From the sequence record MZ443769.1: a stretch of DNA of 64,000 bases. One strand, given 5' to 3'. Positions 1,816-9,545 of this stretch are shown here, one piece after another. Both the position numbers and the translations under genes were made by a program. The stretch's first letter is position 1; each line of letters begins with the position of its first letter. The notes beneath the pieces are model-generated. The model was not told the origin of the DNA and did no database searches. It was given only the letters and a program-made list of their open reading frames with translations.

Positions 1816-4308
1816 ATGGCCAAAGAGAAGAAAGTAAAAGAACCCAAAGCTAAGAAAGCAAAAGCTGTTGCTTCGGACGATGTGGGTGGAAAAGAGATTA
1901 AGGTGTTTAGTCTCTCAAGCATGATGGACGACACGCTCGATCTCATTGAGAAGAAAACGAAAGTAAGTTCTCAGGATGCAGCGCGTCACGCACCACGTAT
2001 CTCAACTGGTGTGCTCGCTCTCGATATGTATCTCGATGGCGGTATTGTACCTGGTGGCTGGTACACATTCGCAGGCGGTGAGCAGTCCTGTAAGTCTACG
2101 ATGACCATGAGTATCATGGCGTCTCTGATTCGACTGAAATATAAAGGGACCAGCGTAGTATTCGACTACGAAGGTTCAACCGATGCTGACTACGTTGCTG
2201 GTCAGTTGAAAACGTTTGGCGTTACTGTCGATCCGAAAACAATCTTCGGTGTGCGTGATACTGATGGTGGCGGCTGGATCATCAAACCTCAGATCCGCTA
2301 CTACGCACCTGATAACGGTGAGCGCTTCTTCGATTACATGTCGATGCTGCGTCGTCGTCTGCCGAACAAAATCGTTGAGAAAGACGGCTCTGCGTATTAC
2401 GTCTTTGAGAACACCAAAGAGAACGCGAAGAAAGTCGCTGGCTTCTACGATAAGAAGTGGTTCAGTCGTAACAACGAATTCAAAGTACCTGCCGAAGATG
2501 CACACATGCAGGCTATGGTTATCGTTGACTCATATCCGGCCATGATGCCTGATGCTGTCGATGATGACGATGGTTCAAAAGCAATGGCGATGCAGGCGCG
2601 TATGTTCTCTGACGGTATCAAACGTTTCCGTGGCGGTATGCGTCGTAAGATGATGACTATCGTTGGCGTTAACCAGATTCGTCTGAAACCTGCTGTGATG
2701 TTCGGCCCGCCTGAGTACGAGCCGTGTGGTGAAGCGTTGAAGTTCTATTGCTTCGCGTCTGACACTAACATCCGTACTGATCACGGTGTGCTGACTGCAC
2801 CTCAGATCAAAGAGCTGCTGGATGATGGTAAAGACGTTAGCGTTGAATCGTTCGACGGCTTCCAACAGATCGTTCAGGCGTGGAAAGTCGATGACGCTCC
2901 ATTCCCTATCGAGCTGTACGCTGGTGGTCACGCATATGTTGGCAGTGCAGAGCACCGTCAGTTCACGCTGATGCACGACACAACCGATGATGGTATGCGT
3001 GTGTTACGCCCTGAGTGGAACACGCTCAATCAGCTTGCGCAATTCCCAAGCGCCGAAGGCCAGTACGCAGCGTTGCGTGTTGCTAAAGTTGAAGAACTGA
3101 AACAGCATACGCCTGACGTGTATGATGAATCTTCCGCTGCTGTTAAACGCCTACTCGCTAACTGCGATCCACAAAGCAAGCAACTGCCTCTCGTATCTAA
3201 AGGTGATACGACGTATGCAGCGAACTGCCTCGTGATTGATATGGTTGGTGATAGCACTGACCAGTCAGACTTCGAGCTGTGGGTTAAGCACTTCATGAAC
3301 ATCGGTATCTTGGCGTTTGCTGATGCTAACGGTATCTGGTTGCCGGGTCTGCATAAGCATGAGCTGGAAGAAGCCTTAGTTCAAGATGCTCTCGGTGCAC
3401 ACGCAGGTATCAGTGATGCTTCGTCCGCTCGTCAACGTCAGACTCAGATGCTGACTGTGATCGCTGACGTATTCCCTGAACTGACTCGTTACGTCCTCGA
3501 CTACAACCTGACTAACGAGCCTATATATCTGGCTCCTGGTTATGATTTCGCGGAAGCGCTTGACGCAATTCTGCATAAAGAAATCAGCGGTTACGACGAC
3601 CAGTACGATCTGCTGATGACTCAGCTTGCGTACATCGAAGACTGGTACACGGTCTGTGACTCAATCGTTCCTGTTCCGTTCTCTCTTCGCGCTCTCGACC
3701 GTGCTGTTGAGTTCTGGGATGTTAACGTTGCATCAACCTCAGTCGTTATCACGAACAACTTCGCATCGCATAACAGTGACGTGCGCGTTCGTCTGACTTC
3801 TCGCGCTGTGCCTCAGGGCTGGCCTGTGATGAAAGACGCTCACGGTATCGTCGGCGAGAAGTCTGTTACTGTTGAAGGTGGTACTGACCGCTATCGTTTC
3901 ATTGCGGCTAAGACTACCAAGAACAAGATGGGTGGCATCCCGAATCAGCAAACGTGGATGCGTTTGTGGGAAGCAGATGGTAATGGTGAAGCGCGTGGCT
4001 TCGACCCAGTGTTTGACTGCTGGCATTATCTGAAAACCCTGGGCTTGATCAACGGTACGCGCAAGAACTTCAAAATGAAAGCGCCGTGTCCTCTCGCATC
4101 TGATGTTAAGATCGATTGGGACGAGTTCCGTACTTTGATCAACGGTAACAAGCAACAAATCATTGACGTGTGTCGTAAGCTGAAAGTGAAGAAGCCTCTG
4201 TCTCTGCGTACGTGGTGCTTCAAGTTCGTGCAGTCCACACAGGGCAAAGAGATGTTGAAAGCGTCTATCAGTAAGTCGGCTAAGGTCGAAGACGACGAAG
4301 ACGATTAA
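1816..4308 (+). CDS. recA: RecA/UvsX-family recombinase, intein-containing
   Basis: ISTGVLALDMYLDGGIVPG, Walker A GGEQSCKST, Walker B VIVDS, AMQARMFS, NQIR, GEALKFY; about 488 aa after splicing. Confidence 0.9.
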   Translation: MAKEKKVKEPKAKKAKAVASDDVGGKEIKVFSLSSMMDDTLDLIEKKTKVSSQDAARHAPRISTGVLALDMYLDGGIVPGGWYTFAGGEQSCKSTMTMSIMASLIRLKYKGTSVVFDYEGSTDADYVAGQLKTFGVTVDPKTIFGVRDTDGGGWIIKPQIRYYAPDNGERFFDYMSMLRRRLPNKIVEKDGSAYYVFENTKENAKKVAGFYDKKWFSRNNEFKVPAEDAHMQAMVIVDSYPAMMPDAVDDDDGSKAMAMQARMFSDGIKRFRGGMRRKMMTIVGVNQIRLKPAVMFGPPEYEPCGEALKFYCFASDTNIRTDHGVLTAPQIKELLDDGKDVSVESFDGFQQIVQAWKVDDAPFPIELYAGGHAYVGSAEHRQFTLMHDTTDDGMRVLRPEWNTLNQLAQFPSAEGQYAALRVAKVEELKQHTPDVYDESSAAVKRLLANCDPQSKQLPLVSKGDTTYAANCLVIDMVGDSTDQSDFELWVKHFMNIGILAFADANGIWLPGLHKHELEEALVQDALGAHAGISDASSARQRQTQMLTVIADVFPELTRYVLDYNLTNEPIYLAPGYDFAEALDAILHKEISGYDDQYDLLMTQLAYIEDWYTVCDSIVPVPFSLRALDRAVEFWDVNVASTSVVITNNFASHNSDVRVRLTSRAVPQGWPVMKDAHGIVGEKSVTVEGGTDRYRFIAAKTTKNKMGGIPNQQTWMRLWEADGNGEARGFDPVFDCWHYLKTLGLINGTRKNFKMKAPCPLASDVKIDWDEFRTLINGNKQQIIDVCRKLKVKKPLSLRTWCFKFVQSTQGKEMLKASISKSAKVEDDEDD
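2749..3774 (+). mobile_element. Intein (342 aa) in RecA/UvsX
   Basis: Block A CFASDTNIRTDHG directly after ALKFY; block B SAEH; blocks F/G FWDVNV...NNFASHN followed by +1 Ser (SDVRVRL), which restores the RecA ALKFY-S-VR motif. Confidence 0.9.
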
Positions 4309-4321
4309 TATAAACCAATAG

Positions 4322-4349
4322 AGGCGGGCTTCGGCTCGCCCTTTCTTTA
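4322..4349 (+). terminator. Rho-independent terminator
   Basis: GGCGGGC-TTCG-GCTCGCC then CTTTCTTT. Confidence 0.75.
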
Positions 4350-4363
4350 ACAGGAAAAATGAA

Positions 4364-4741
4364 ATGTCAAAAACGTATCTCGCTGATATCGGAAACTTAG
4401 GTCTTATCAAACTGGCTATCAATGCTGACGTTCGCCCTCTGAATATCGAAACGCTCAAAGAGCTGGACTCTGCTGATCTGCCTACTGACCTGAACCGTGT
4501 GTACATCGTTGGTGCTAACGTCGCGCCTGCTATGTTCACTGAACTCGAAAGCTACATCGACCCGTCTGAACTCGTTGCTGACGTTGAGAAAGGTAATATC
4601 GGCAAGCTGTTCAACCGTGATGTTATTCGCAGCGAACAGGTAGACCCTGATATGCTGGCGCTGGTCCTGCTGTTTAGTCCGAACAATGACAGCGAAGCAC
4701 TCGAAGTTCTCGGCTTTGCTGCTGTGAAGATTAATCTGTAA
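4364..4741 (+). CDS. hypothetical protein
   Basis: 125 aa, AGGA RBS, strongly biased codon usage. Confidence 0.85.
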   Translation: MSKTYLADIGNLGLIKLAINADVRPLNIETLKELDSADLPTDLNRVYIVGANVAPAMFTELESYIDPSELVADVEKGNIGKLFNRDVIRSEQVDPDMLALVLLFSPNNDSEALEVLGFAAVKINL

Positions 4742-4744
4742 ATA
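4735..4744 (+). promoter_or_regulatory. TCTGTAAATA class II motif
   Basis: Recurrent motif; followed by 9-bp hairpin GAGCGAGAG-ATTCA-CTCTCGCTC (4752-4774). Confidence 0.45.
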
Positions 4745-4815
4745 CAACACAGAGCGAGAGATTCACTCTCGCTCACATTCAACTCGATAGACCATAAGGT
4801 CAGGAGTATTAGACG

Positions 4816-5535
4816 ATGAAAAGAATTCACGTACAGACATTACCGCTAGACGCACTCAACGGACTTGTTCACGGTTTCCACCACCATGAACGTCACCACA
4901 ATTTCGGTCGGGTCGATGTATCTTTATATTACATGGACGTGACAGCTCAAGCAGCGCAGAACTCCTTGTTCTCTATTTTGAAAAAAGAAAAGCATAACAT
5001 CAAACCTGTGGGTTACGATAGTATCAGCTCTGTTCAAGGTAAAACGCTGCCTGAAATAGCTGGCACTGTGTTATCTACTAGCCTGCTTCACGTTGACCGT
5101 GTATCTATCGCATCTAACCTAAACGACATGTTTGGCAGTATGCGCCGCTCTGGACTCACTAAACAAAGCACAATAACAATTTACGGTGAGCCTGGAATTG
5201 AGAAGCTTATGCACATGGCGAACGACGTTGCATACGCAGCATATAGCGAAGCCGATAACTCCTCAATCCGACTAGGCCATGAAGGTACGACGACAAATCT
5301 TCCGTTAGATACTCTCATGAAACTTATTCTCGATACTGAGAAGAACATTTGTGCTATGATTCATAATTCGCCTGCGAACGTATACACGTTTGGTCCTGAG
5401 CTTACGATCTTGGACCCTGAGTGGTTGTCTAAGTTTCTTTCGTGTGTGAAGCGTACAGGCAAGAGCGCACATCTTCATCCAGAACTTCATCGTAAGTTTT
5501 TTGACGCTGAAATTTCCATTTACGAATTCGTATAA
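4816..5535 (+). CDS. hypothetical protein
   Basis: 239 aa, AGGAG RBS. Confidence 0.8.
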   Translation: MKRIHVQTLPLDALNGLVHGFHHHERHHNFGRVDVSLYYMDVTAQAAQNSLFSILKKEKHNIKPVGYDSISSVQGKTLPEIAGTVLSTSLLHVDRVSIASNLNDMFGSMRRSGLTKQSTITIYGEPGIEKLMHMANDVAYAAYSEADNSSIRLGHEGTTTNLPLDTLMKLILDTEKNICAMIHNSPANVYTFGPELTILDPEWLSKFLSCVKRTGKSAHLHPELHRKFFDAEISIYEFV

Positions 5536-5574
5536 CTGAACACAATGCTGTGTGTAGTCTTTGCCAATTGGCAC

Positions 5575-5604
5575 GGGAGATCATGATGGTCTCCCATTTT
5601 TTTT
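5575..5604 (+). terminator. Rho-independent terminator
   Basis: GGGAGATCA-TGA-TGGTCTCCC then A and T8. Confidence 0.8.
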
Positions 5605-5641
5605 ATTTAAATTCCCAGCATATGTCTTGAGAGTCTGCGCT

Positions 5642-6661
5642 ATGTCTAAAGAAACTTACTTAGAAGTACATGATGCCTATATTGCAAACAATTTCTTGCA
5701 GGATATTCCACGTTCTAAGCTGACAGCTCGCTTCACTGAATATTTGAATCGTGTCAAAGGCGTTGTTCCTTCCAACGGTATTCCTATGGCTGAATTCTTG
5801 CAGTGGGCAAACATGATGCCAGCTAAGGACGAGGAGATCGATTCCCGTAGAATGCTGTTTACGGTTGGCATTGTCTACACGCATTTCATCTGGTCGTTCA
5901 CTAAAGCCTCCTATGTTGTTGAGCGTGACATATGGAAGCATCTTGTCGAGAGCGACTCTCCAAAAATACTACCGTCTGCTACACTCAAGCAACTCCCTCA
6001 CTGGTCTCAGTGGATTGCAGCACCAGTTACTGTCACACACAAAGACAGCAAGTCCGATACATCTTACATAATTGATTCGGATGGTTTCTGGGCGACCTAT
6101 GCAAATTTCAACGAAACAACCCACATGAACCTGGCCTTTGTTGGGTCTATCAGCATTAATAACGACCGTCATATAATGCACATGCAACTTATCTTTGACA
6201 TTACCAAAGATATGGAATTGATTGATGGTTTCGATTGGTTCATGTTTATATTAGGTGAAAATGGAAGTTCACACATAGACCCGAGTACACCAGAAGGTCC
6301 TGTCGTAGCTCGTATTCTTGAAGAATTTATGAAGCCTGTTGTCAACGTTCTTTTGTTCATTGCATCGGAAGTAGACAACATCTACAAGGGAGGTATGAAA
6401 AGGTTTAAACCTCGTAAGCAGGGTAACTCATACAAAGTTATACCAGTGCGCGATGTAAGAGAGTGGCGAGTAGGTACAGAGTTACTTAATGAAATTCGTA
6501 CTTACGAAAACGAAGTAGAGACTGCGAAGTCGCAAGGCCGTCGTGCTCATATACGACGCGGCCATTATCATAACTACTGGTACGGTCCGCGTACTGGTGA
6601 CCGTCAGCTCAAATCAAGATGGGTTCCACCTTGTGTTGTTAGAGGCACCATCGAAGATTGA
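5642..6661 (+). CDS. AcrVA2/FinQ-family-like protein
   Basis: C-terminal AHIRRGHYHNYWYG...RWVPPCVV plus upstream LP.W, GFWA.Y, LLF...D..YKG and G..L..E.R.Y blocks are colinear with AcrVA2 as recalled. Start placed at ATG 5642, after the terminator. Confidence 0.65.
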   Translation: MSKETYLEVHDAYIANNFLQDIPRSKLTARFTEYLNRVKGVVPSNGIPMAEFLQWANMMPAKDEEIDSRRMLFTVGIVYTHFIWSFTKASYVVERDIWKHLVESDSPKILPSATLKQLPHWSQWIAAPVTVTHKDSKSDTSYIIDSDGFWATYANFNETTHMNLAFVGSISINNDRHIMHMQLIFDITKDMELIDGFDWFMFILGENGSSHIDPSTPEGPVVARILEEFMKPVVNVLLFIASEVDNIYKGGMKRFKPRKQGNSYKVIPVRDVREWRVGTELLNEIRTYENEVETAKSQGRRAHIRRGHYHNYWYGPRTGDRQLKSRWVPPCVVRGTIED

Positions 6662-6706
6662 GTTCTATCAACCTCCACGTATGAGCTGTTAGCTCGGAGA
6701 AAAACT

Positions 6707-7468
6707 ATGTCCCGTGTACAAAATGTCTATATCCCTGATGTTGAATCGTTTGAACCTTACGTCCGCTCACTGTGTCACATGGCGCGTATACTCGATCAAA
6801 ATGGTACTAACTACAACAAGATGAAACACGTAGTTGTTATCGGTACTTCTAAACGTATGGCAGAAGCTTATGTGCGACAGCTTCTCGGATCAAAAGACCT
6901 ACCCAGCAATCTTATCTGCTTCGGTTGTGATGAATCACCTGTCAATCACCGCGAGTTCTCTTACATCGGTTCGCATGTCGTGCTGCTGCCTGAATTGAAC
7001 TATGCGTCTGAAAGCGCTTTGGATAAAATCTCACGCCGCGTTATTGAAATGATTTTGAGCCTGAAACAGAAGGACGAAGACACAGAGCTAAAGAATGGCG
7101 CTCTCACTGTCACGTATCAGAATCCAAGAATCTGGTCATGCCTCATTTCATGTGGGGCCGTCATGAACGCGCCGAACTATGCTAACATTCAGTTCCAGAA
7201 AGATTTGGTGTCTTCCATAGGCGTAGGCCAACTCATGGACTGTATGACGAATGAAGACTACCACGAACTTCATGCGCAAACGATCACGATCGGCCTTGAG
7301 TTCCTGTACGTCAAAACCGAATACATTATTGAGAAACTGCACAACCTGCTGTGGTCACTCAGCTCAACAAACAGTGAGTTCAAGGATAAGCACACGGTAG
7401 TCCTGCACGACGATTTCCGTCTGGCCTTATTCGAACAATATCTGCTCTACGACTTCCGTGGGTTTTAA
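6707..7468 (+). CDS. hypothetical protein
   Basis: 253 aa, GGAG RBS. Confidence 0.8.
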   Translation: MSRVQNVYIPDVESFEPYVRSLCHMARILDQNGTNYNKMKHVVVIGTSKRMAEAYVRQLLGSKDLPSNLICFGCDESPVNHREFSYIGSHVVLLPELNYASESALDKISRRVIEMILSLKQKDEDTELKNGALTVTYQNPRIWSCLISCGAVMNAPNYANIQFQKDLVSSIGVGQLMDCMTNEDYHELHAQTITIGLEFLYVKTEYIIEKLHNLLWSLSSTNSEFKDKHTVVLHDDFRLALFEQYLLYDFRGF

Positions 7469-7542
7469 GACTATTCTTAGTCCTGTTCTCTAATTTCTAA
7501 ACGTCGGCAAGTAGTGCTGACGAGACGTTATTGGAGAATAAC

Positions 7543-7803
7543 ATGTGCGGACGTAGCCTAGTACGGTTGAAGTATCTCGCACGGTCCTCGAACTGGTGCA
7601 ACAATAAAGTAAACGCTTGTAATAAGCGGAAGGCGAAGCATGTACAGTGTGAAGAATTTCTGGCAGCCACGAAAGGTTGTAGCACTGTCCAACTCTCGCC
7701 CAGTGTTATCTCGTTCTATTGTAATTCTGAACTGGTCGGTCAGACAGTATGGCATGAAATAGAAGGCGATAATTCACTTCAATTCCGTCTGTTACTCGCA
7801 TAG
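7543..7803 (+). CDS. small Cys-rich hypothetical protein
   Basis: 86 aa, GGAG RBS 6 nt before the ATG; atypical composition. Confidence 0.45.
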   Translation: MCGRSLVRLKYLARSSNWCNNKVNACNKRKAKHVQCEEFLAATKGCSTVQLSPSVISFYCNSELVGQTVWHEIEGDNSLQFRLLLA

Positions 7804-7806
7804 TCT

Positions 7807-7847
7807 AAAGGGCTGTCAGAAATCAATCTGATGGCCCTTTCTCTTTT
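7807..7847 (+). terminator. Rho-independent terminator
   Basis: AAAGGGCTGTCAGA-AATCAA-TCTGATGGCCCTTT then CTCTTTT. Confidence 0.75.
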
Positions 7848-7911
7848 ATACGCTAATTTTTAAACGTATAAACGCGCGGTGTTCCGCTACCTCACTCTAA
7901 GGATATTCATT

Positions 7912-8844
7912 ATGTCTTTGATTAAACTCGAAGGCGTTGCATCTACTTCTGCTGTATCAAAAGCACAGAAAGATGCGGCTGTCTACATGTTCGGTTCTAA
8001 AGGTCACAGCATTGTTGCAGTGCTTGACAAGTTCGCTCGCGCAAAAGAAATTCAGGCGCCGCACCTTGCTGGTATTCTCGCGCTGATGAAAGATGGTGAA
8101 GATGACGAAATCATCAAATTCACATCGTCCGCTGCTGGGAAGAAGTCTATCGTTGCTGCGAAGCAATTCGCTATTGCAAAAACGTTTACGAACGCAATCA
8201 AATACCTGAAACTGATTCGCGTTCCGATGAAGTGGATTCCAGGCCACTCTGATACTGCGGCTGCACGTATTCAACAAACCGAAACTATTCGTGCAAGCAA
8301 ACGCGCTTCTACAAAACCTGAGAAGCCTATCAAGCTTGATAACCCTCATGCACCTGAAGCCGTAGAGCAAGAACAAACCAAAGCGTCTGCCGCTATCAAC
8401 AAGATTTGGGACCTGTCTAAGTTCAAATCAAATCTTCTTGATTCGTCTTGGTCTGCGTTGATCACTGCATTCAACACAGAGTTCAAAGGTCGCTATGTGT
8501 TGAAACTGAACAAGCGTGAAGGTGCATTCCGCATCAACACTCTCAATGGCGGTTACTCTGGTCGTGGTGAAGCATTCCTGTCTGCTGCTTTCGAAAACAA
8601 TTCGTGGGTAATGTTTGCCAACGACCCTGCGACTAAGAGTGCTGCATTCGATAGTTGGTACGTCGGTCCTAAACTGACATTCGCAACAATCGTTTCGTAT
8701 CTGAGCAACGAACTTGCTGGTCCTCATTCCGGTGAGAAGCAAGAGATCGATAAGCTGATCGCTGGCGCTGTTATCTTCCCGCACAATGATCGCTATTACG
8801 ATGCGACAGAAGACCAGCCGAAAAAGACTACTGCAAAAAAGTAG
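7912..8844 (+). CDS. hypothetical protein (zero-frame product of candidate -1 frameshift gene)
   Basis: 310 aa, AAGGA RBS; ends GCA AAA AAG TAG. Confidence 0.85.
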   Translation: MSLIKLEGVASTSAVSKAQKDAAVYMFGSKGHSIVAVLDKFARAKEIQAPHLAGILALMKDGEDDEIIKFTSSAAGKKSIVAAKQFAIAKTFTNAIKYLKLIRVPMKWIPGHSDTAAARIQQTETIRASKRASTKPEKPIKLDNPHAPEAVEQEQTKASAAINKIWDLSKFKSNLLDSSWSALITAFNTEFKGRYVLKLNKREGAFRINTLNGGYSGRGEAFLSAAFENNSWVMFANDPATKSAAFDSWYVGPKLTFATIVSYLSNELAGPHSGEKQEIDKLIAGAVIFPHNDRYYDATEDQPKKTTAKK

Positions 8845-8900
8845 TTACCAGTGCACCTGCTGCATACACTCCTTCGGGGAAAAGCGCAGATACACTGGTA
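8835..8900 (+). other. candidate -1 programmed ribosomal frameshift signal
   Basis: In-phase A_AAA_AAG (8835-8841), stop codon, then stem TACCAGTG (8846-8853)/CACTGGTA (8893-8900) enclosing a cUUCGg hairpin. Confidence 0.55.
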
Positions 8901-9545
8901 GACGAAATCGCAGAAACTCCTGCCAAGAAAATTGCAGCGAAAGGTCTTCGCGAGAAAGAAGAATACTTTGCTGCACTAGCTACGGTGCTAGGTCGTAACT
9001 TGCCTGCATATCGCGTAGAAGCAACGCACGAAGGTGTGACTGTTACACGTGGCTCGAAGGTCAACACTGTGCGTCTCGGCGAAAAAGCTTGGACCATTCA
9101 GATGGGCATCACTGCTAAACTGAAATCACTCGGCGCCAAGTTTGATATCGTTGATCTGCTTGGTATGATTGACAAAGGTATCGCCAGCCCAAAGCTTAAA
9201 GCCGGAGTTCCCGGCCAAGCAATGCCGATGCCTTACTTTGATGCCGTGAAGAAGAACGCGCAAGACGGAACGTATGATACCGTTATCTACATGGAAGCTG
9301 ATCGAATTTATCCTCTGGCGCTCAAGCGTGAAGGGAATATGTTCACAATGAAAGTTTCTATGTTCGGCCCTATTCAGCATTTCATCACTCAAGGTATTCA
9401 GGAGTGTGGTGCAACGCTGACTGGTGTGACGGGTAGATCATTCACGTTCAATGAAGACGATGCCAACGCATTTGAGAAGTGGCTTAAAGCTCAACGTAGA
9501 CCGAAGACGCTTTCGACCAAATATCTGATGCCACAGGCTTTGTAG
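8841..9545 (+). CDS. hypothetical protein domain in -1 frame (possible C-terminal extension of 7912 ORF)
   Basis: Frame is open and protein-like from 8841 (VVTSAPAAYTPSGKSADTLVDEIAE...); the first start codon, GTG 8985, has no SD. Confidence 0.7.
   Translation, partial: VVTSAPAAYTPSGKSADTLVDEIAETPAKKIAAKGLREKEEYFAALATVLGRNLPAYRVEATHEGVTVTRGSKVNTVRLGEKAWTIQMGITAKLKSLGAKFDIVDLLGMIDKGIASPKLKAGVPGQAMPMPYFDAVKKNAQDGTYDTVIYMEADRIYPLALKREGNMFTMKVSMFGPIQHFITQGIQECGATLTGVTGRSFTFNEDDANAFEKWLKAQRRPKTLSTKYLMPQAL

Follow-up and report, generated by a model that had tools for sequence, protein, structure and literature searches.

Introduction

The anti-CRISPR protein AcrVA2, encoded by a prophage of Moraxella bovoculi, binds an LSKT peptide that is conserved at the N-terminus of Cas12a. 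It is the first case in bacteria of a protein that reads a polypeptide as it emerges and causes destruction of the corresponding mRNA. In the preprint describing this mechanism, AcrVA2 recognizes the N-terminal polypeptide of Cas12a in a process that depends on translation and is independent of promoter and codon sequence, and the cas12a mRNA is lost, mainly in its 3′ part (AcrVA2 preprint). The mutations W79A and D89A weaken the protein, with the D89 change causing a moderate loss of function, and the mutants H286A, R288A, and H291A retain Cas12a binding while down-regulation of both mRNA and protein is abolished (AcrVA2 preprint). According to a 2026 review summarizing a 2026 paper, the C-terminal part of AcrVA2 associates with polysomes as well as ribosomes, and an enzyme of the cell is recruited to carry out the cleavage.

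Homologs of AcrVA2 are carried by plasmids and megaphages, mostly where Cas12a is absent, and its authors accordingly considered that other targets are possible and suggested that the family serves in conflicts between mobile elements (AcrVA2 preprint). The plasmid protein FinQ, for example, lowered the mRNA of F transfer genes (AcrVA2 preprint). AcrVA2-like proteins in huge phages have likewise appeared in earlier published work, and ORF43 of Shewanella phage vB_SbaS_Y11 was published as a putative AcrVA2. Thus, it is already known that AcrVA2/FinQ family members occur in phages whose hosts are not known to carry Cas12a, and the question of their targets has already been posed. The locus described here adds a new observation, which is the exchange of a single gene of this family, as a cassette, between phage backbones whose flanks, where compared, show 99% identity.

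A full-length AcrVA2/FinQ family member in a jumbo phage

The DNA analyzed, called the window throughout, is a stretch of 64,000 nucleotides from record MZ443769.1. It matches the final 64 kb of the genome of Erwinia phage pEp_SNUABM_52, the 3 kb that were tested being 100% identical. The phage, a member of Sasquatchvirus Y3 with a genome of 261,095 bp, infects Erwinia amylovora, and vB_EamM_Y3 is 98.9% identical. The gene of interest is as follows.

5642..6661, plus strand: AcrVA2/FinQ-family gene of 339 aa, from its open reading frame and translation; pEaSNUABM52_00248, called a 'hypothetical protein' in GenBank

The reading frame is intact from the ATG at 5642 to the TGA at 6659-6661. A longer frame with a TTG start extends from 5561, but this frame would span a terminator-like hairpin (see below), and the N-termini of homologs align with the ATG. 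For these two reasons, the ATG at 5642 is taken to be the right start, and the start given in GenBank is identical. The 64-kb window holds no second copy of the gene.

Sequence and structure searches place the encoded protein in the AcrVA2/FinQ family. With the single protein as query, phmmer returns the AcrVA2 chain 7ci1_A at an E value of 1.5e-7, with query residues 71-333 aligned co-linearly to chain residues 67-316, and AcrVA2 (7ci1/7ci2) is the only real match to a PDB sequence. A nine-sequence profile built from close homologs reaches AcrVA2 at 3.4e-14, where chain residues 255-317 are matched within the C-terminal part. The AlphaFold2 (AF2) model of the 339-aa protein (pLDDT 83, pTM 0.84) matches 7ci2_A in Foldseek at an E value of 3.1e-13 with a probability of 1.00 and a TM score of 0.48-0.54. 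AcrVA2 chains are the sole significant Foldseek matches in the PDB, the next match having an E value of 0.28. Identity to AcrVA2 over the structural alignment is 17-18%, and at a TM score near 0.5 the domain arrangement of the modeled protein may differ from that of AcrVA2. Fold matches to ribosomal proteins were insignificant (E > 1, probability at most 0.44), and mimicry of a ribosomal component was rejected on this basis.

Plasmid FinQ is found by tblastn at an E value of 1e-8, with 23.8% identity over residues 78-333, and the finQ-annotated matches lie on 500-plus conjugative plasmids of Escherichia, Salmonella, and Shigella. Sequence, fold, FinQ, and the extent of the family (see below) are four independent lines of evidence. 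Collectively, these results establish pEaSNUABM52_00248 as a full-length member of the AcrVA2/FinQ family with firm homology to AcrVA2. A preliminary description of this DNA, made from its letters and open reading frames, had proposed the likeness to both proteins, and each is now recovered with the window's own protein as query, AcrVA2 by sequence and fold and FinQ by tblastn. All six peptide strings quoted in that description occur in the 339-aa translation, and the similarity to AcrVA2 greatly exceeds what chance would give.

Established family collections offer less guidance regarding this protein. Scans of local copies of Pfam-A and NCBIfam assign it to no family, and a PADLOC scan gives insignificant matches only. 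It matches PHROG 6160, an unnamed family, at an E value of 7e-95. A precomputed Pfam label, PF26125, is attached to all nine of the close homologs found by a word-indexed protein search, and a literature search found no mention of this accession. An exhaustive profile search yields 2599 representatives at E ≤ 0.001 and only nine at E ≤ 1e-30, which indicates that the jumbo-phage proteins are a small, distinct branch of the family.

Conserved and variable parts of the protein

Three parts of the protein can be distinguished by their conservation and predicted structure, and the most conserved of these carries a short histidine-containing motif.

5642..5839, plus strand: N-terminal helical part, residues 1-66, with AF2 helices at 3-15, 24-37, and 49-55
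5840..6391, plus strand: middle part, residues 67-250, in the AF2 model comprising a helix with W84, a patch at residues 101-125, a variable beta-sheet, and a long helix
6392..6658, plus strand: C-terminal part, residues 251-339, the most conserved according to the profile match and the identities between allele groups
6548..6565, plus strand: H-I-R-R-G-H motif (H303, R305, H308), aligned to AcrVA2 H286, R288, and H291

The C-terminal part corresponds to the region of AcrVA2 that is needed for mRNA down-regulation and is reported to associate with ribosomes. The three motif residues aligned with those whose mutation inactivates AcrVA2 are invariant in 12 jumbo-phage alleles, and among 157 family representatives H303 is kept in 156, R305 in all, and H308 in 156. 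Near-invariance of these residues across so many members argues for one common activity of the C-terminal module. Of the two other mutated AcrVA2 positions, W79 aligns with W84, which is kept in 150 of the 157 representatives, and D89 aligns with E94 in a column that holds Asp in 106 representatives, Glu in 21, and other residues in 30, so that it is acidic in 127. At this second position the window's protein retains an acidic residue, but a different one. Within the patch at residues 101-125, P111, L118, P119, and W121 are found family-wide, with P119 present in 157 of 157.

Conservation is distributed very unevenly along the protein. Identity between allele groups is 58% over residues 300-339 and 45% over residues 101-125, compared to 9-20% over residues 126-250 and 10% over residues 1-30. 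Residues 1-66 as a whole have no sequence alignment to AcrVA2, since the HMM alignment begins at residue 71, and show 10-21% identity between allele groups. As far as can be judged from these alignments, the conserved C-terminus and the variable N-terminal and middle parts match the effector and recognition modules proposed below.

Genomic surroundings

The genes around this locus all lie on the plus strand, in the order RpoD-like sigma factor, SSB, UvsX, two genes designated up2 and up1, the AcrVA2-like gene, and further genes of unknown function. Neighbors are named as annotated in Yoloswag, pEa_SNUABM_5, and pEa_SNUABM_17 and according to Pfam, PHROG, and PDB scans. The features of the immediate neighborhood are listed here.

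1816..4308, plus strand: UvsX/RecA-like recombinase, the conserved left anchor (Pfam RecA, PHROG 97, PDB RecA; 58-78% identity to relatives)
4364..4741, plus strand: up2, 125 aa, hypervariable in a comparison of relatives
4816..5535, plus strand: up1, 239 aa, hypervariable or exchanged, with 18-35% identity between most genomes and missing in some relatives
5539..5573, plus strand: conserved non-coding block with a small hairpin (22 nt, ACACA...TGTGT arms), its core invariant in 10 genomes
5575..5604, plus strand: terminator-like hairpin and T-run, the hairpin at 5575-5595 having 9 pairs, 5 of them G-C; kept in 10 related genomes
6707..7468, plus strand: dn, 253 aa, starting 45 nt past the AcrVA2-like gene and probably co-transcribed with it
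7807..7840, plus strand: next terminator-like hairpin, the probable end of the transcription unit, two more genes past the AcrVA2-like gene

The products of up1, up2, and dn have no match in Pfam, PADLOC, or the PDB and no PHROG function. Scans of Pfam, PHROG, PADLOC, and the PDB also reveal no acr or aca gene, HTH regulator, or known anti-defense gene adjoining the locus.

The preliminary description proposed that the gene is its own unit after a strong terminator. The upstream half of this proposal agrees with the terminator-like hairpin at 5575..5604. The remainder does not hold, because no terminator was found between the AcrVA2-like gene and dn, and the next terminator-like hairpin lies two genes on, at 7807..7840. 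The lack of an intervening terminator makes it probable that dn is co-transcribed, and the AcrVA2-like gene probably heads a three-gene unit, as predicted from the sequence. A search of positions 4200-8000 found no sigma-70-like promoter, compared to 6.4 expected from shuffled sequences.

The conserved non-coding block upstream of the hairpin is unique in the window and is present even in genomes where the upstream gene is missing. Rfam gave this element only an RprA-like match below threshold, and its consensus fold is almost without covariation, so no RNA is proposed here.

A fixed slot with exchanged alleles

Twelve genomes were compared, representing Sasquatchvirus, Alexandravirus, Yoloswagvirus, Rivsvirus, and unassigned relatives. 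In each of the 12, and thus across four jumbo-phage genera, the AcrVA2-like gene is present in single copy at the same position. Among these genomes, protein identities are 76-100% for the sigma factor, 67-100% for SSB, and 58-100% for UvsX. The AcrVA2-like proteins fall into three allele groups that share 25-35% identity with each other. The group that includes the window's allele has internal identities of 35% to 95%, of which those between the window's protein and the remaining members are 35-56%.

The clearest case of exchange is provided by phages pEa_SNUABM_40 and pEa_SNUABM_23. After rounding, identity is complete for the sigma, SSB, and UvsX proteins of the two phages, and their up2 and dn proteins are 99% identical, whereas their AcrVA2-like proteins share 32% identity. 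In a comparison covering 17 kb of flanking DNA, the two genomes are 99.3% identical until 18-24 nt before the start codon and again 98.9% identical from about 100 nt (about 32 codons) before the stop codon onwards. Between these two breakpoints, within the body of the open reading frame, there is no alignable DNA. Two further isolates carry the S40 cassette with 99.4% identity, and S23 and S31 share the backbone without carrying the S40 cassette. Similar breaks are seen in the pairs S33/AD1 and S1/S17, where the right end lies 40-45 nt before the stop codon. Furthermore, the sequenced alleles have different leaders between the T-run and the start codon. From these breakpoints and differing leaders, the exchanged unit is defined as running from the upstream terminator, at its left edge, to the conserved C-terminal coding segment, at its right edge.

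The two preceding genes, up1 and up2, are likewise variable or absent, and their patterns show no relation to which AcrVA2-like allele is present. The three genes up2, up1, and the AcrVA2-like gene together make up a small exchange hot spot within an otherwise conserved block.

Rates of substitution help to distinguish between exchange and rapid change. The dN/dS ratio inside allele groups is 0.05-0.10, close to the values for flanking genes, which indicates that the alleles are functional and under purifying selection. Positive selection acting across the gene as a whole was rejected on the same values. In the allele group of Alexandra, AD1, S1, S35, and S23, dS in the body of the open reading frame is 1.6-3, compared to 0.4-0.8 in the flanks, and the last 85 codons have a dS of 0.24-1.25. 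The excess of dS in the body over that in the flanks implies that this part of the gene derives from older lineages than the backbone that carries it. Allele diversity at this site is thus a product of old alleles and exchange, not of rapid amino-acid change.

Host and target

Erwinia amylovora has been described as carrying CRISPR-Cas of type I-E and a remnant array of type I-F, and that description makes no mention of Cas12a (PMC9004355). Resting on this published account of the host, a target other than Cas12a is a reasonable inference for the window's protein. E. amylovora is a genetically uniform species, and this uniformity sits oddly with the existence of many specificity alleles, unless the natural hosts of these phages are broader. 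The AcrVA2 authors drew the same inference of a target other than Cas12a for the whole family, megaphages included.

Proposed mechanism and alternative explanations

The evidence can be combined into a proposal in which the protein would act as a ribosome-linked mRNA silencer directed by a nascent peptide. Through its conserved C-terminal module, the protein would stay attached to ribosomes during translation and, by recruiting a host enzyme, would set off decay of the mRNA being read. Recognition of the emerging polypeptide of one particular target would fall to the variable N-terminal and middle parts. This target, which would be specific to the allele and not Cas12a, would be a host defense protein or another host-interaction protein that varies among natural hosts, with a defense factor being the most likely choice. 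Variation of the target among natural hosts is considered most likely because near-identical phages carry deeply divergent alleles that are swapped as one cassette, and cassette exchange of this kind argues for allele-specific targets. Ribosome association, mRNA decay, and the target are all transferred by analogy from AcrVA2, a relative with 17-18% identity over the structural alignment. The TM score near 0.5, the Glu at the D89 position, the retention of the gene in every genome sampled, and the lack of an adjoining acr-associated regulator or known anti-defense gene also speak against the proposal. The chain of steps as a whole seems slightly more likely than not.

A more far-reaching form of this proposal would regard the slot as a site for interchangeable specificity cassettes, each joining a common, conserved, ribosome-linked decay module to a differing peptide-recognition domain so that related jumbo phages silence different host proteins, perhaps those of defense systems, while the chain is still nascent. 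Specificities would then be traded through recombination events whose limits are the upstream terminator on one side and, on the other, the C-terminal coding segment that is conserved. This extension is put forward tentatively and might well prove to claim too much. If it is true, the AcrVA2 family would constitute a naturally modular, polypeptide-addressed gene-silencing system.

Other explanations must be weighed against a host-directed silencer. The protein might instead serve conflicts between mobile elements, as FinQ does, by silencing genes that belong to plasmids or prophages resident in the same cell or to phages infecting it at the same time. FinQ is homologous and is reported to lower transfer-gene mRNA of F, a role of this kind was suggested for the family by the AcrVA2 authors, and allele exchange among co-circulating phages fits targets that vary between competitors. 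However, a lytic jumbo phage has limited need for conjugation control, and identity to FinQ is only 24%, such that this explanation seems unlikely.

A similarly low probability is attached to a function in the phage's own program, in which the protein would regulate phage gene expression or would shut off the host by eliminating a single conserved mRNA. Retention of one copy in every genome examined, at a constant place in the block with sigma, SSB, and UvsX, would be expected of such a factor, as would strong purifying selection and the lack of a second copy in the window. The block is one of replication and recombination genes, a setting that would suit a housekeeping function as well. Yet slow co-evolution would be expected of a factor and its single conserved target, and here alleles with 32% identity sit in backbones with 99% identity. 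The large excess of dS in the body of the open reading frame over that in the flanks also speaks against this view, as does the finding that two adjacent genes behave as exchangeable accessory genes.

It is also conceivable, although rather improbable, that the family fold has been reused here for another biochemical activity unrelated to translation-coupled mRNA decay. The fold resembles no enzyme and identity to AcrVA2 is low, both of which leave room for this idea. Against it stands the observation that 157 divergent members show almost no variation at the residues that AcrVA2 cannot lose by mutation without losing its activity. Finally, a classical anti-CRISPR that down-regulates Cas12a, as AcrVA2 does, shares with the window's protein its family, fold, and important residues, but this role is very hard to credit in a phage for whose host type I-E and a type I-F remnant array have been described, with no mention of Cas12a (PMC9004355), in a family most of whose members occur where Cas12a is absent (according to the AcrVA2 authors), for a protein whose expected target-recognition parts are not alignable to those of AcrVA2 or are very divergent from them, and at a locus with no other acr or aca genes nearby.

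The locus sharpens the question of what the family targets, because the gene is always kept and is constrained, yet is swapped between phages that are 99% identical over 17 kb of flanks. Natural pairs of isolates that differ at this position, at least within the 17 kb compared, offer a route to new targets of the family.

Comparison with known systems

The closest characterized system is AcrVA2 of the Moraxella bovoculi prophage. The two proteins are of similar length (about 322 compared to 339 aa), have the same fold, and are co-linear over residues 71-333 of the window's protein. Both have the conserved W, the LP.W and GFW patches, and an H-x-R-x-x-H motif of identical spacing, and both are encoded by mobile elements. 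They differ in that the first ~70 residues and the middle sheet of the window's protein are not alignable to AcrVA2, and in that the position of D89 is occupied by Glu. The carrier also differs, being a lytic phage of 261 kb instead of a prophage, without an AcrVA1-like neighbor and with a host that has no reported Cas12a.

FinQ is a homolog with a target other than Cas12a, and the genes it targets are reported to have lowered mRNA. Unlike the protein described here, FinQ is plasmid-borne (on IncI-type and related plasmids) and acts on F transfer genes. The present gene resides in a 261-kb phage genome with no conjugation genes in its neighborhood, which sets it apart from fertility inhibition of the FinQ type. 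ORF43 of vB_SbaS_Y11 is, by its published description, also comparable to the window's protein, in that it is a phage-encoded family member whose host is described with type I-E and no Cas12a, although its carrier is a siphovirus of 63 kb.

Same-family homologs are present in jumbo phages of Klebsiella, Serratia, and Salmonella. Agricanvirus Special G gp231 (annotated 'putative protein FinQ') and RisingSun gp126 ('putative mycothiosynthase') belong to the same family and are found in a different neighborhood. Among jumbo-phage homologs, fold matches in BFVD reach TM scores of up to 0.88. Identity to the window's protein is below 25% for the jumbo-phage homologs outside the syntenic group and 25-56% within it. 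The homologs of Alexandravirus, Yoloswagvirus, and Rivsvirus belong to the same family and occupy the same slot after the genes for sigma, SSB, and UvsX.

A non-coding block with an invariant core ahead of the terminator

Directly before the hairpin and T-run that separate the AcrVA2-like gene from its upstream neighbor, there is a short non-coding element whose conservation sets it apart from the genes around it.

5539-5573: non-coding block of 22 nt, its arms reading ACACA...TGTGT, and then a small hairpin
5575-5604: terminator

Genome comparison revealed that the core of this block is unchanged across 10 genomes, whereas the genes on either side share only 25-56% identity. The block occurs once within the window, and it is kept in genomes that lack the upstream gene. 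A search of Rfam returned only an RprA-like match, which at 27.6 bits falls below the gathering score of 70, and almost no covariation, if any, was seen in the element. The block could serve as a regulatory site, or it could form the body of a small RNA reaching as far as the terminator.

Several of the intergenic gaps in the 4200-8000 region hold terminator-like hairpins. A scan of the same region for sigma-70-like promoters yielded none, with shuffled sequences averaging 6.4. Because a gene for an RpoD-like sigma factor of the phage itself lies just upstream of the window start, the phage may use promoters of a different kind.

Genes upstream of the AcrVA2-like gene

Three genes precede the block on the same strand as the AcrVA2-like gene.

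1816-4308 (+): UvsX/RecA-like recombinase, 830 aa
4364-4741 (+): gene without assigned function, 125 aa
4816-5535 (+): gene without assigned function, 239 aa

The latter two, just upstream of the AcrVA2-like gene, are likewise hypervariable or exchanged among genomes that are similar elsewhere, and their variation does not track that of the AcrVA2-like allele. Both pEa_SNUABM_40 and pEa_SNUABM_23 lack the 239-aa gene. Family and structure searches with both genes produced zero matches. These genes may represent further host-interaction functions.

For the recombinase, the PHROG alignment covers the entire protein yet uses no more than about 480 positions of the profile, a difference that implies approximately 350 inserted aa. 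The top RecA-core match ends near residue 314. One possibility is that this candidate insertion is an intein, but Pfam reported no intein domain in the protein. The corresponding gene of pEa_SNUABM_17 carries an additional insert of about 1 kb.

Annotation and origin of homologs

The annotation of three phage homologs of the AcrVA2-like protein looks wrong in part. Judging from the aligned leaders, the start in Dickeya phage AD1 (annotated 8031-8957) appears to be too far downstream, and that in Alexandra (annotated 7902-8954) appears misplaced, upstream of the terminator. RisingSun gp126 is labeled a "putative mycothiosynthase", but belongs to the AcrVA2 family by sequence and fold. Outside the named phages, the nearest homolog shows 56% identity and is recorded as part of a metagenome-assembled genome of Raoultibacter sp.; the 9-kb contig that carries it is probably a mis-binned jumbo-phage fragment.
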